DNA of 64,000 bases from IMGVR_UViG_3300044680_000280:186001-250000; one strand, 5' to 3'; shown: positions 7,094 through 60,380, counted from the first letter of the stretch. The notes: generated by a model from the letters alone, not told the origin. Numbers and translations are program-made.

Positions 7094-7715
7094 CGACCAC
7101 CATAATCGAGCGATTCACCCGTTGGAGCATGATTCCCAAGAAGTCTCCGACTCTCGTATAAAGGCCCAGCATTTCTGGGGAGGCCGTGACGACGGCAGCG
7201 TCGGGCGACAGCTCGGCCGGGAGCACCTTGATACCATTTACGACAGTTACGTAACCCTGGGTCATCATGAGCTGCTCCACCACGGCAGAGTCGTAGTCCG
7301 GCCCACAGATGTCGGGAATCTTCTCCGCCGACACCATAAGGAAGCCGGGTTCAAAGTCATCCGCTGCCAGTCGGTCGACCGCCTCTACCACACTACTACA
7401 CCGATTCTTCCACCCATTGACCAAAGACGCCTCTAGTAGACTCATGTACAGTTCGGCGAAAAGGGCGGGTTCGTCCTCTAGCGGAACGTCCGAAAAGGCG
7501 TATCTAGCAATGCCCCTTGTTTTGCTTCGGATGGTCGGCACGAACCGCCGAGCCGCGTTGGTCACCAATAATGGTTCGACGTCCTCCTCGACTGGAATCT
7601 CGTTCATGAGCGGTCTAGAGCTGACGCCAGAACGTATCGAGGCCTCTAGTTTCTCAGGCATACGCATATTGCGTCGCTCCGAAACTAAGAACTGCCCAAA
7701 AACGGAGACTGGCAT
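7077..7715 (-). CDS. hypothetical protein
   Basis: 212 aa, overlapping junctions with neighbours. Confidence 0.65.
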   Translation of the reverse strand: MPVSVFGQFLVSERRNMRMPEKLEASIRSGVSSRPLMNEIPVEEDVEPLLVTNAARRFVPTIRSKTRGIARYAFSDVPLEDEPALFAELYMSLLEASLVNGWKNRCSSVVEAVDRLAADDFEPGFLMVSAEKIPDICGPDYDSAVVEQLMMTQGYVTVVNGIKVLPAELSPDAAVVTASPEMLGLYTRVGDFLGIMLQRVNRSIMVVGDGVV

Positions 7716-38738: not shown

Positions 38739-39104
38739 TAGTGGACCCGCCGAGAATTGAACTCGGGTCCGAAAGATCGTCCTGATCACCCTCGTTACGT
38801 GCGTAGTCGGCTTGAGGCAACCGACGGCCTTGCGGGAAATGGGTGAGTTGACCCGCGTCTCAGCAACCTAATGTGTCCCCAGCTCACCGATTGCGAGGTG
38901 GCTGTATGCCTCGTGTGGGTTGACGACCCGTTGTCCGATACTCGAAGTCCTCTCGGACGGGTCGCCGATCAGGCCGCGATGGCGAGATCGGGGATGCCGT
39001 TGTCGTTGGCTGGTGTTTTCGCCTCGATTTGATTAAGCCGGGTCGAAGGAGCCCGCCTACACGCAGATGGTCGTTCTGTTCCTCCGTCGAAACCTGTCAG
39101 GCCC
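38739..39104 (-). ncRNA. ssrA: tmRNA, tag (A)ANDNGIPDLAIAA
   Basis: 5' GGGCCTGACAGGTTTCGAC; tag ORF ANDN...LAIAA*; 3' T arm and G3:U70 Ala acceptor. Confidence 0.93.
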
Positions 39105-41915: not shown

Positions 41916-42191
41916 TTATTTTTTCAACGAATCTACGAGTTTTTCGATTTCCTCGGAGCTCGCCTTTGACACGGAAACCATGACGATTCGCGGCTCAGAG
42001 AGTTCGTGAAGCATCCTAAGAATAACCGAGGGTGATTCTAGGGGAGCTCCTGCATCGGGTCTGGTGGCGCCCATAAAAACCAGGTCCTCAACTATCTCCC
42101 CACCATTCGCTATAGTGATCGAACTGTTAAGATGTTGGAAACAGCGTTTCCTCAATTCTGCAATCTCTACCGCTGACAGACATCTAGACAT
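41916..42191 (-). CDS. hypothetical protein
   Basis: ATG 42191 with GAGG RBS, lies between tRNAs. Confidence 0.55.
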   Translation of the reverse strand: MSRCLSAVEIAELRKRCFQHLNSSITIANGGEIVEDLVFMGATRPDAGAPLESPSVILRMLHELSEPRIVMVSVSKASSEEIEKLVDSLKK

Positions 42192-42212
42192 GAGATTTCC
42201 CTCACAAAAGAG

Positions 42213-42288
42213 TAGCCTCCACGCCGTGAGTCGAACACGGTGCAGCATCCTTCGCACGGATGAGCCAGGAATCCGCCTGGACGTGGAG
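42213..42288 (-). tRNA. tRNA-Arg(GCG)
   Basis: CATCC-GTGCGAA-GGATG anticodon arm. Confidence 0.75.
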
Positions 42289-50323: not shown

Positions 50324-50470
50324 CCCTTCCGCGTTCGAGTAGCTATGGCTGAAATTGCTTTGTTCGTTTTGCAGACGAATGCCTTACCACTTGGCGACAA
50401 TCCCCAATGGGGATCGATGGGATTCGAACCCACGAATGCTTGTGAGCCACAACAGAGAAACGCGAGAAGG
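50324..50470 (-). ncRNA. circularly permuted tRNA mimic (YrlA/Y-RNA-like)
   Basis: Order T arm, closed acceptor CGATCCCC-ATT-GGGGATTG, D arm, GCA anticodon arm; enclosed by long terminal stems. Confidence 0.75.
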
Positions 50471-58870: not shown

Positions 58871-59200
58871 AAATAGGAAGGGTGTGTCTCCGCCCCCTTC
58901 GGGGCTTCAACACACCCGTCCCCAACGAACCCCGCCTTTACGGAGGAGCCCGTTTCACGAAACGAAACCAGGAGGGATGTCTTCCAATTCGTGATGCGGA
59001 TTGGTGGTCCGCACTTTTGAGCGCCCCGTTTGTCCCACCTGTCTTGTCGGTGGCTGGATACTATGGGCGCACGTTTTTCCTCCGACCAGAAGCATCGGAG
59101 GTATGGATGACGTTCGATTACCGTTTTCGCCGGGTCGAACTTCATCGGGTCCTGTCTAAATTTTCAAAGATCAGGAGAGCCCGAAGGCGCTCCCAATCAG

Positions 59201-59272
59201 TTCCGGGTGGAGGATTCGAACCTCTCGTAGGCGGCTTCAGAGACCGCTGTCCTACCATTGAACGAACCCGGA
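59201..59272 (-). tRNA. tRNA-Gln(CTG)
   Basis: Cloverleaf. Confidence 0.9.
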
Positions 59273-59314
59273 ATGCGTTACACGAAACTAAAATCCTATT
59301 TTACATTTGTGCAG

Positions 59315-59387
59315 TGGATCCGGAGGGAGTCGAACCCTCGACACATCGGGTAAGAGCCGAGTACTCTGGCCACTGAGTTACGGATCC
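59315..59387 (-). tRNA. tRNA-Lys(CTT)
   Basis: Cloverleaf. Confidence 0.9.
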
Positions 59388-59410
59388 ATGATTCGGTCTC
59401 ATCGACCGAG

Positions 59411-59483
59411 TGGACCCCGTGGGCATCGAACCCACAACCCTCCGGGTAAAAGCCGGCAGCTCTGCCAATTGAGCTAGGAGTCC
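59411..59483 (-). tRNA. tRNA-Lys(TTT)
   Basis: Cloverleaf. Confidence 0.9.
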
Positions 59484-59947
59484 TCTCTTTCTTTCGGCGC
59501 CGGTGTCACCGGCGCGGGCTTTTTGAGTTTCATGGGCAGTGGGTTTCCTTGAAAATGCGTGACTTTGAATTCCGTGTACTTGGAGCCGAGGCTGATTGTG
59601 GCTTGTCCTTGGACAGACACTGACGGTATTAGGTAGAGGGTACGGTCACCGGTTATGATGAACAACAGGTCGATTTGGGTGGGGTCGAAAACCTTCGTCT
59701 TACCCGTTCCGCTTTTGTTGCCACCCTTTACCCTCAGATCGGAAACCCATCCACCATAACGGTAACGGGTCGCCGTCTTTACCTGCACCTTTTGAAGCCT
59801 TCCCTGAATGTCTATGACGAGGTCGTAGTCCTGACTGTCCGTGAGGGGTATACAAACTGTGTACCCCTGCTCTGTAAACCAGCCAATGGCAATACCTAAC
59901 CCAGCATCTCCTTGCTTTTTCGAGTTCTTGTGATCTGTCAGTTTCAT
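59474..59947 (-). CDS. PD-(D/E)xK homing-type endonuclease (I-Ssp6803I-like family)
   Basis: QGDAG...GYTVCIPLTDSQDYDLVID...KVQVKT. Confidence 0.85.
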   Translation of the reverse strand: MKLTDHKNSKKQGDAGLGIAIGWFTEQGYTVCIPLTDSQDYDLVIDIQGRLQKVQVKTATRYRYGGWVSDLRVKGGNKSGTGKTKVFDPTQIDLLFIITGDRTLYLIPSVSVQGQATISLGSKYTEFKVTHFQGNPLPMKLKKPAPVTPAPKEREDS

Positions 59948-59954
59948 GTCTTCG

Positions 59955-60036
59955 TGGGGAATGGTGGAGTCGAACCACTTGCACTAGGCCACGGTGTTAC
60001 AGACCGCTAGGACTTCCACTGTCCCGAACACTCCCC
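59955..60036 (-). tRNA. tRNA-Tyr(GTA), possible 8/4 fold
   Basis: GGGGAGTG/CATTCCCC acceptor, GTGG/CCAC T stem, loop CTGTAAC. Confidence 0.8.
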
Positions 60037-60055: not shown

Positions 60056-60091
60056 GCGAAAGAGCCGCCGAGGTTTCCCAGGGCGGCTCTT
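60056..60091 (-). terminator. intrinsic terminator just upstream of the first tRNA (attenuator)
   Basis: AAGAGCCGCC-N12-GGCGGCTCTT-TTCG. Confidence 0.75.
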
Positions 60092-60126
60092 CAACGAGTC
60101 AAAGACTCAGTTTGCGATGCCGCCCC

Positions 60127-60294
60127 TTATTGTCCCACCTCCGGTTGGGCTAGTAAGGAGGTGGGATACATATTCGTAGGCTGGATCTTCGAAAAGTGAC
60201 GGAGGCTACCCTTCGTATCGACGACACAAGTCCCTGCCTTCGCTGATTTCAGCGATGCGCAGTTTCTTGTTTCGAGCGACCAAAGTATTGACAC
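60127..60294 (-). CDS. putative attenuator leader peptide (55 aa, all 20 amino acids)
   Basis: GGAG-N6-GTG start; stop immediately followed by GGGGCGGC, complementary to the terminator 5' arm. Confidence 0.55.
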   Translation of the reverse strand: MSILWSLETRNCASLKSAKAGTCVVDTKGSLRHFSKIQPTNMYPTSLLAQPEVGQ

Positions 60295-60380
60295 GTTGTT
60301 CTCCAAATGACCGCGAGTAGCGGGTGAAGTATGTTTATACAGCACGTGCACCGGTTGCGCAAGTGCTTTTCAGAAAAAAG

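Follow-up and report, generated by a model that had tools for sequence, protein, structure and literature searches.

In the 64,000-nucleotide stretch of DNA analyzed here (the window), a block of phage tRNA genes is preceded by an element that we interpret as a ribosome-mediated (leader-peptide) transcription attenuator. We regard this reading as the better bet, with a probability of roughly 0.6; translation of the leader, termination, the coupling of the two, and the number of tRNA genes controlled are all inferred. What the analysis does show is the anatomy of the element, its conservation, the covariation of two RNA strands, i.e., a segment directly past the stop codon of the leader (segment A) and the 5' arm of a terminator-like hairpin (T5), the position of the stop codon beside segment A, and selection on the leader peptide for coverage of all 20 amino acids.

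Layout of the leader and of the first tRNA block

The source contig, IMGVR_UViG_3300044680_000280, is a phage sequence of 406,734 bp, which the window matches at 100% identity, and a second contig of 463 kb from another sample is near-identical to it. When the leader region was used as the query in a blastn search (distant mode) of the GenBank phage collection, no similar record was found. According to ARAGORN, the window holds an array of 37 tRNA genes and a tmRNA gene, all on the minus strand between approximately 32 and 60 kb, which is broken up by protein genes and by further promoter-like and terminator-like sites. The elements of the leader described below likewise lie on the minus strand.

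The leader open reading frame (ORF; 60294 to 60127) comprises 55 sense codons followed by a TAA stop codon (60129-60127) and contains all 20 amino acids. Its GTG start codon (60294-60292) is preceded at a distance of 6 bases by a Shine-Dalgarno-like GGAG (60301 to 60304) and is located approximately 35 bases past the -10 region of a promoter-like element, CTTGCGC-N15-TGTATAAA (60334 to 60363), which can equally be written as TTGCGC (60362-60357)-N17-TATAAA (60339-60334). An earlier note, made from the sequence alone, had proposed the promoter TTGCGC-N17-TATAAA, the arrangement GGAG-N6-GTG, the 55-codon ORF, a 10-bp hairpin at its end, and pairing of the bases past the stop codon with the downstream hairpin; all of these held and were found at their places. 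Its description of the promoter as sigma70-like held only in part. The motif is present, but it is a poor match to sigma-70, with three of six positions matching in the -35 region and a -10 region without the final T, and a simple sigma-70 scan did not flag it.

The promoter-like element is conserved in the form CTTGCRY-N15-TGTA, a pattern that occurs once in the 64-kb window versus 0.03 times expected. Specifically, the relatives described below share, upstream of their ORFs, an A-tract, ACTTTTCCCC, CTTGCAC, 15 bases, and TGTA. The element also resembles a motif, CGGTGTAR, that is overrepresented on the gene strand just ahead of start codons (12 occurrences versus 2.7 expected), and genes with a sigma-70 region-4 domain occur in the arrays of relatives. 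We infer that the element is likely to be read by a phage factor; the polymerase that reads it and the host are undetermined.

The earlier note had stressed that the ORF uses 44 distinct codons, including ATA, AGA, TTA, and CTA, where about 36 would be expected for uniform draws. This statement held: 55 uniform codon draws yield 36.4 ± 2.4 distinct codons, with P(≥44) = 0.0013. Among the 34,898 stop-free 55-codon segments in the six frames of the 64 kb (mean, 33.0 ± 3.0 distinct codons), only four reached 44, all of them overlapping the leader ORF, which is hence the most codon-diverse such stretch of the window. The runners-up comprised one other locus at 43 and approximately ten at 42; taken alone, the codon count represents the top of a tail and not a clear outlier. 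Given the leader peptide and the codon usage of the phage, 37.2 ± 2.2 distinct codons would be expected versus the 44 observed (P = 0.003). An enrichment for codons matching the tRNA repertoire of the phage was not found, as 39 of the 44 codons are readable by tRNAs of the window compared to 53 of all 61 sense codons. The ORF matched no family in Pfam or PHROG, and a search of 5.8 billion proteins with the 55-residue ORF alone gave no candidate.

The first gene past the putative attenuator is tRNA-Tyr (GTA; 59954 to 60034, minus strand; ARAGORN), which is separated from the terminator-like hairpin (-24.8 kcal/mol) by 21 bases and which follows the leader in almost all relatives as well. The remainder of the conserved first block is formed by tRNA-Lys(TTT), tRNA-Lys(CTT), and tRNA-Gln(CTG) (59200 to 59483, minus strand). 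The order Tyr-Lys-Lys-Gln is kept among the relatives, and in this phage the block additionally holds an inserted PD-(D/E)XK gene. After tRNA-Gln, another terminator-like hairpin (59194-59175) with a tail of the same kind as that of the leader hairpin is found, followed by a conserved, TTGACA-led, promoter-like element of undetermined nature. The proposal of the earlier note that the attenuator controls the tRNA array therefore held only in part: the Tyr-Lys-Lys-Gln block, here together with the PD-(D/E)XK gene, is all that clearly lies downstream of the attenuator and ahead of another terminator-like site and is inferred to be the controlled unit, whereas evidence that the attenuator governs the entire array is lacking. 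A search with the attenuator hidden Markov model (HMM) revealed no second copies inside the array; each locus, the window included, yielded a single copy.

Conservation of the leader frame and of its amino-acid set

Homologous leaders were located via synteny of the upstream 220-residue gene first, then with a peptide profile, and then with a DNA pattern scan. The 220-residue gene shows a weak concanavalin-like match and has 16 homologues, several of them on contigs of 88 to 530 kb. The shared gene order consists of a DNA methylase, small genes, the 220-residue gene, a spacer of 350 to 640 bases, and tRNA-Tyr, Lys, Lys, Gln, Asn, Thr, Glu, and others. In each syntenic spacer examined, an ORF of 52 to 64 codons was present on the tRNA strand, with a C terminus reading P-E-V/A-G-T directly before the stop codon. 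A paralogue of the upstream gene with 29% identity (L018) was accompanied by neither tRNA genes nor a leader.

When 1.84 billion representatives were searched exhaustively with the profile, only 11 small proteins were returned, which were the leaders themselves; the leader family is therefore tiny. Wherever the DNA context was obtained, its members adjoin tRNA-Tyr. This includes the three most distant members with contigs examined, which again lie just upstream of tRNA-Tyr; in L024, which is one of the three, the gene preceding the leader is a different one. The DNA pattern scan, filtered with the attenuator HMM, contributed three more IMG/VR contigs of 94 to 372 kb. In a further genome contig set the scan gave 44 matches, a number compatible with chance for 16 specified bases, and the attenuator HMM confirmed none of them.

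Overall, a homologous leader ORF with a length of 51 to 64 codons was present in every related array found. The resulting set contains 23 distinct peptides, which fall into 11 clusters below 60% identity, and for 17 of them the DNA was available. A further peptide without His (P0027) represents a truncated gene call and was excluded from this count. The leader peptide of the window is only 19 to 29% identical to the other members. Recognizable peptide motifs are M-T/N-L-R, ASWC, Y-L-x-D, and N-P-E-V/A-G-T. AlphaFold, run on the family alignment, predicted neither a fold nor secondary structure (pLDDT, 52; pTM, 0.13), the alignment being shallow. Several family members have been annotated as hypothetical proteins by gene callers.

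All 20 amino acids are present in each of the 23 distinct leader peptides. For random draws of 52 to 64 residues, the chance of such completeness is 1.7 to 6.0% with the composition of the family and 2.3 to 6.8% with that of the window proteome, and among the real long ORFs and proteins of the window, 1.5 to 2.6% hold all 20 amino acids. The contribution of shared descent was simulated on a maximum-likelihood tree with per-site rates, the composition of the family, and the gap patterns of the tips, each run being seeded with a complete peptide actually observed at one tip. Four rootings were used, and in none of the 1500 runs per rooting did the other 19 tips all turn out complete; on average 0.6 to 3.6 of the 19 were complete, and 14 at most. 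When the 14 most conserved columns were frozen (W, C, Y, D, and I included) and the copy of the window was omitted, full completeness was obtained in 1, 0, and 0 of 3000 runs. Shuffling of residues within alignment columns left on average 7 of 20 peptides complete (maximum, 13). With one representative per 60% cluster, 20,000 column shuffles left 2.2 of 11 peptides complete on average and never more than 7, compared to 11 of 11 observed. These simulations and shuffles show that completeness is explained by neither chance nor shared descent and that coverage of all 20 amino acids is under selection.

Simulations and shuffles fall short of the observed completeness because rare residues change their position in the alignment and nevertheless persist. 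Specifically, H, D, C, I, F, N, W, and Y switch alignment columns among lineages, and loss was never seen. His occupies at least four different columns and differs in position even within the close pair L008 and P0028. Relocation was also found for Asp in L022, for Cys in P0028, for Ile in L024, L025, and P0026, for Phe and Asn in several lineages, and for nearly all rare residues in the copy of the window. Each peptide contains five to eight amino acids that occur a single time; Trp and Tyr occur once each in all 20 peptides tabulated, usually joined by His, Asp, Ile, Cys, Phe, or Asn. Two members, L020 and P0020, are without an internal Met, and elongator tRNA-Met would therefore not be sensed there.

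With regard to codons, 13 of 14 copies exceeded the diversity expected from peptide and local codon usage, mostly by less than 2 standard deviations, while L025 remained well below expectation (31 versus 36.2). As codon diversity is marked only in the copy of the window and is weak or absent in the relatives, the trait of the family is amino-acid coverage rather than codon coverage. Of the pan-codon sensing claimed in the earlier note, only this part can be retained: a high codon diversity in the window's copy, with weak support elsewhere, and amino-acid coverage as the property that the family conserves. The comparison of related arrays for which that note had called thus confirmed the conservation of ORF length, frame, and position as well as of the anti-terminator pairing, but not that of codon diversity.

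Translation of the leader ORF is inferred, and direct evidence for it is lacking. In its support, the frame and the position of the stop codon are maintained across the relatives despite many insertions and deletions, at lengths of 51 to 64 codons. In the main clade, the variation at codon positions 1 to 3 amounts to 0.21, 0.17, and 0.34, respectively, and is thus highest at the third position. The conserved C-terminal P-E-V/A-G-T codons vary synonymously (GTC/GTA/GTG, GCC/GCA, and ACC/ACG/ACT), and the copy of the window possesses the GGAG motif mentioned above. The ORFs of the relatives have a conserved ATG context at the start and mostly no Shine-Dalgarno motif before the ATG, which is likewise the case for approximately half of the genes of the phage.

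RNA structures within and after the reading frame

The layout downstream of the ORF is common to all sequences and consists of the stop codon, segment A, a small hairpin, the 5' arm (T5), the loop, and the 3' arm (T3) of the terminator-like hairpin, and a tail reading nnCGTTTC. In the window, segment A (GGGGCGGC; 60119 to 60126, minus strand) represents the 5' strand of the predicted anti-terminator; its first base lies directly past the stop codon, and it pairs with GCCGCCCT (60087-60080) inside T5. The anti-terminator encloses the small hairpin GAGTC TTT GACTC (60096 to 60108, minus strand), which is variable in sequence and present at the same place in every relative. The terminator-like hairpin (60056 to 60095, minus strand; -24.8 kcal/mol) is composed of T5 (60095-60078), a loop (60077-60074), and T3 (60073-60056), followed by ATTTC.

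In all 17 sequences with DNA, segment A has a length of 7 to 9 bases and either starts 0 to 1 base past the stop codon or overlaps the last G of the latter. When folding was restricted to the RNA spanning the stop codon through T5, corresponding to a transcript in which T3 is not yet made, A was predicted to pair with T5 in 17 of 17 cases, with energies of -15 to -30 kcal/mol. The T5:T3 hairpin of the same 17 sequences reaches -21 to -30 kcal/mol. In folds in which the bases that a ribosome would cover at the stop codon were kept unpaired, the terminator was obtained in 14 of 14.

The two anti-terminator strands covary. Pairing of A with its own T5 was more stable than pairing with swapped partners (-15.5 versus -12.7 kcal/mol; permutation P = 5e-5 for 11 distinct combinations). 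For example, GGGGCGGC pairs with GCCGCCCY in the window, L013, and L023; GGAGGCGG with CCGCCTCC in L004; GGAAGCGG with CCGCTTCC in the L014 group, L022, and L024; and GAGGCGG with CCGCCTC in L008 and L026. L021 displays one A-C mismatch. In L029, A and T5 have changed jointly to an A-U pair, whereas T3 keeps a G-U wobble, indicating that A is not a mere copy of T3. The RNAalifold consensus recovered the terminator with compensatory pairs. The comparison therefore supports the proposal that a ribosome at the stop codon masks the anti-terminator; the mechanism as such is inferred, without any experiment.

Past the hairpin, only a short, broken T-tract follows (TTTCGCATTTC in the window, nnCGTTTC among relatives), and a simple terminator scan did not flag the site. 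Action of the hairpin as a terminator is inferred, and its efficiency is undetermined in view of the weak T-tract. Furthermore, when the full leader is folded as it would be without translation, the minimum-energy structure of approximately half of the sequences has A paired into the ORF rather than with T5, so that the terminator forms; the on/off default in the absence of ribosomes is therefore uncertain.

A further hairpin, H1 (60133 to 60166, minus strand), is located inside the 3' end of the ORF and comprises 10 bp formed by TCCCACCTCC (60166-60157) and GGAGGTGGGA (60142-60133); the predicted fold of the last 66 nucleotides of the window's ORF has an energy of -21.4 kcal/mol. An equivalent hairpin, CCTCCG...CGGAGG, is predicted in relatives and is conserved according to RNAalifold. 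Since several peptide motifs coincide with predicted RNA hairpins in the ORF, part of the peptide conservation may reside at the RNA level. Searches of Rfam, including the T-box family RF00230, with the leaders of the window and of L014 gave no match at E ≤ 10.

Proposed mechanism, rival explanations, and known systems

In the proposed mechanism, the conserved promoter-like element would start a transcript whose first feature is the ORF of 51 to 64 codons. This ORF would be translated, its sole consistently selected property being the presence of all 20 amino acids, with a single occurrence for most rare residues, and segment A and T5 would form an anti-terminator. A ribosome that finishes the ORF and rests at its stop codon would cover A, with the consequence that the T5:T3 terminator forms and transcription stops before tRNA-Tyr. 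A ribosome stalled earlier, when any charged tRNA is missing, would allow A to pair with T5, so that no terminator forms and the polymerase continues into the tRNA genes. With every amino acid represented in the leader, a shortage of any charged tRNA would result in read-through. As stalling would switch the genes on and free translation would switch them off, phage tRNAs would be produced on demand and their production would shut itself off. The response should presumably need severe depletion, because most rare amino acids are represented by single codons, and such a requirement, as we infer, fits loss of tRNAs better than mild starvation. H1 may serve as a pause site, or it may keep a C-rich strand from pairing with A.

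A bolder reading, for which we see the odds as evenly balanced, is that giant soil phages use a "test peptide" that samples all charged tRNAs through at least one codon per amino acid and that, via classical attenuation, switches on the phage's own tRNA genes when any species runs out. Cleavage of tRNAs by host defense nucleases or host shut-off could possibly act as the triggers, a speculation for which there are no supporting data. The suggestion of the earlier note that the leader senses depletion by host anticodon nucleases is likewise speculation, and nothing in the analysis bears on it.

The regulation of large phage tRNA sets is essentially unknown, and the reason for the near-complete tRNA sets of giant phages is debated, with codon usage, host shut-off, and escape from anticodon nucleases under discussion. 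If the attenuator reading is correct, it would provide the first regulatory logic tied to phage tRNA arrays and would favor the view that the tRNAs are made in response to a failure of translation. It would also mean that leader-peptide attenuation, a textbook mechanism known for single or few amino acids, can be used to sense decoding capacity as a whole. In the bolder reading, the element would be part of a self-limiting circuit of tRNA supply, with a type of sensor undescribed for any cell or virus. It could also be a compact reporter of tRNA depletion.

Four rival explanations were considered. The one that survives best, although we consider it unlikely, is an attenuator that reports general translation activity, i.e., ribosome supply, initiation, or shut-off by defense or antibiotics, with the codon content being secondary. 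Its anatomy would be identical, and single codons per amino acid would imply a low sensitivity to mild starvation. In its favor it can also be argued that leaders known to sense antibiotics react to stalling whatever its cause. However, this rival does not account for the retention of all 20 amino acids, at shifting positions, in 23 of 23 peptides.

According to a second rival, the element is simply a gene for a small protein, followed by the terminator of that gene; the 55-residue product would serve an independent function, and the full set of amino acids and the pairing past the stop codon would be side effects. The conservation of the ORF, the recognizable peptide motifs, the highest variability at third codon positions, and the annotations as hypothetical proteins speak for this view. 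Several observations make it very improbable, however. The completeness of 23 of 23 peptides goes beyond what descent yields, with the conserved columns frozen or not, and rare residues relocate instead of holding functional sites. Even the copy of the window, at 19 to 29% identity, is still complete. There is no signal from Pfam, PHROG, or structure prediction, and the family is tiny and lies beside tRNA-Tyr where the context was obtained. Finally, in each of the 17 sequences with DNA, the stop codon adjoins an anti-terminator strand that covaries with its partner.

A third rival, to which we assign a similarly small likelihood, is a structured non-coding leader that acts independently of translation, either as an element for processing or stabilizing the tRNA precursor or as a T-box-like switch binding a protein or a tRNA, with the ORF being present by chance. 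It is favored by the coincidence of hairpins with peptide motifs, e.g., CAGGCnAAAAGCCTG (corresponding to Q-A-K-S-L) and CCTCCG...CGGAGG, by the relatives without a Shine-Dalgarno motif, and by L008, which keeps GGAGG while the peptide changes from PEVG to PAEG. On the other hand, a frame of 51 to 64 codons with the same end relative to A is found in 11 clusters despite insertions and deletions, synonymous variation is seen, the full amino-acid coverage has no rationale at the RNA level, and neither a T-box nor any other Rfam match was obtained at E ≤ 10. The last rival, a chance ORF in an intergenic spacer before an ordinary terminator, could have drawn on a codon count that, prior to the comparison, lay in the tail of the distribution (43 at one locus and 42 at approximately ten) and on the lack of a hit in the search of 5.8 billion proteins, but it is contradicted by the comparative data, with ORF, stop position, and composition conserved in all related arrays, and can be practically dismissed.

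For the preferred reading, a leader-peptide attenuator with all 20 amino acids, no precedent was found in the literature: full-text searches revealed neither such a leader before tRNA genes nor a description of an all-amino-acid leader. T-box riboswitches resemble the proposed system in that they sense tRNA charging and, ahead of genes for translation components, choose between anti-terminator and terminator. However, they bind one uncharged tRNA directly, have no ORF, and carry a conserved T-box sequence, whereas the phage leader has a conserved ORF and no T-box match. In the antibiotic-responsive leaders of Bacillus subtilis (bmrB-bmrCD, vmlR, and tlrB/yxjB) and Listeria (lmo0919), stalling in an ORF disables a terminator as proposed here, and the signal is general trouble in translation. 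Unlike the phage leader, they respond to drug-stalled ribosomes, often involve nascent-peptide motifs, and control resistance genes. To our knowledge, no antibiotic-responsive leader needs full amino-acid coverage or controls tRNA genes.

The pheST attenuator with its pheM leader is likewise a leader-peptide attenuator placed over a component of the translation machinery; unlike the phage leader, it senses Phe only, controls a synthetase, and is bacterial. Multivalent attenuators, namely that of thr (Thr and Ile) and those of ilvGMEDA and ilvBN (Ile, Leu, and Val), share with the phage leader the sensing of several amino acids by mixed codons of one leader, but they respond to only two or three amino acids of a related kind, each represented by many codons, whereas the phage leader contains all 20, mostly as single codons.

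The closest parallel in structure is offered by the trp, his, leu, thr, ilv, and pheA attenuators of enterobacteria, which also possess a short promoter-proximal ORF with the stop codon beside the anti-terminator strand. As predicted for the phage leader, their terminator and anti-terminator share a strand and are mutually exclusive, and a stall in the ORF leads to read-through. The phage leader differs from them in having no run of regulatory codons, as every amino acid is present and the rare ones occur once, and in its length of 51 to 64 codons versus approximately 14 to 32. It is, moreover, encoded by a phage, precedes tRNA genes instead of genes for biosynthetic enzymes, and has a weak T-tract and an uncertain state without translation. 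Judging from its sequence, we infer that the element works like the amino-acid-operon attenuators, whose structural criteria it meets with regard to the ORF, the stop position, and the predicted exclusive hairpins, if less clearly for the U-tract, and that its all-20 leader, its tRNA targets, and its location on a phage set it apart from them. Within this comparison, H1 could match the pause or "1:2" element of the amino-acid-operon attenuators.

The interval between the leader and the first tRNA genes

In relatives of the window phage, a second small open reading frame (ORF) is located between tRNA-Tyr and the terminator-like hairpin that follows the leader ORF. Specifically, it occupies positions 6277-6369 in L004, 6192-6284 in L013, and 6262-6351 in L014, and it was also found in L016, L019, L020, and L022-L026, all of them related phage loci carrying a homologous leader and tRNA array; in the window, this interval does not contain it. 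The ORF has AGGAGA followed, after 8-10 bases, by ATG, encodes a peptide resembling M..P.TQRESYR.S..PY, and runs into tRNA-Tyr at its 5' end.

In two further related loci, L008 and L027, ARAGORN did not find a tRNA-Tyr 3' of the leader. At the corresponding sites, which lie at about 6290-6362 in L008 and between the terminator and tRNA-Lys on the reverse strand of L027, a T-arm and an acceptor-like 3' end are still present (GGTTCGATTCC...), and a divergent or interrupted tRNA-Tyr is conceivable.

Between tRNA-Tyr and tRNA-Lys of the window, a gene for a PD-(D/E)XK endonuclease of 157 residues is inserted (59474-59947, minus strand; PF11645, E = 5e-18). The insertion occurs only in the window phage and in its near-identical twin from another sample, L003, and the gene appears to represent a mobile, homing-type nuclease within the tRNA block.

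Further elements of the array

A conserved element of 220-440 bases separates tRNA-Gln from tRNA-Asn (window 58871-59199, minus strand) and occupies the same place in L004, L008, L013, L014, L016, L019, and L024. It starts with a hairpin and a T-rich tail directly 3' of tRNA-Gln, followed by TTGACAATTTAGCAGGAC (TTGAAAATTTAGACAGGAC in the window), continues with a structured middle part featuring GGAAAACGCGCGC and CTCCTGTTCGTTCGTGGAAGGGGCG, and ends with a strong hairpin with a T-run immediately 5' of tRNA-Asn. The element has no conserved ORF and matches no Rfam family; it might be a small RNA of unknown kind that is transcribed from a promoter of its own.

The tRNA array of the window also includes a phage-encoded tmRNA (38739-39104, minus strand; Rfam, 96.7 bits) with the tag ANDNGIPDLAIAA. 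At 50350-50404 (minus strand), Rfam reports a short tRNA match of 55 bases (35 bits), whereas ARAGORN lists no tRNA there; the match may reflect either a fragment of a tRNA or a tRNA of unusual type.

A codon-diverse stretch and a recurrent motif

The stop-free stretch ranking second in codon diversity, with 43 distinct codons in 55, is located at window 42106-42276 on the plus strand, opposite to the genes, and its diversity was treated as due to chance.

The motif CGGTGTAR occurs at 12 sites in the window versus 2.7 expected, e.g., at 7396, 15643, 17571, 25905, 32396, and 39638 on the minus strand. The gene strand carries ten of the 12 sites, and several of these ten precede start codons by 6-15 bases; placement is the same in relatives. 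CGGTGTAR probably represents a phage-specific promoter element, yielding 5' leaders that are very short or absent.
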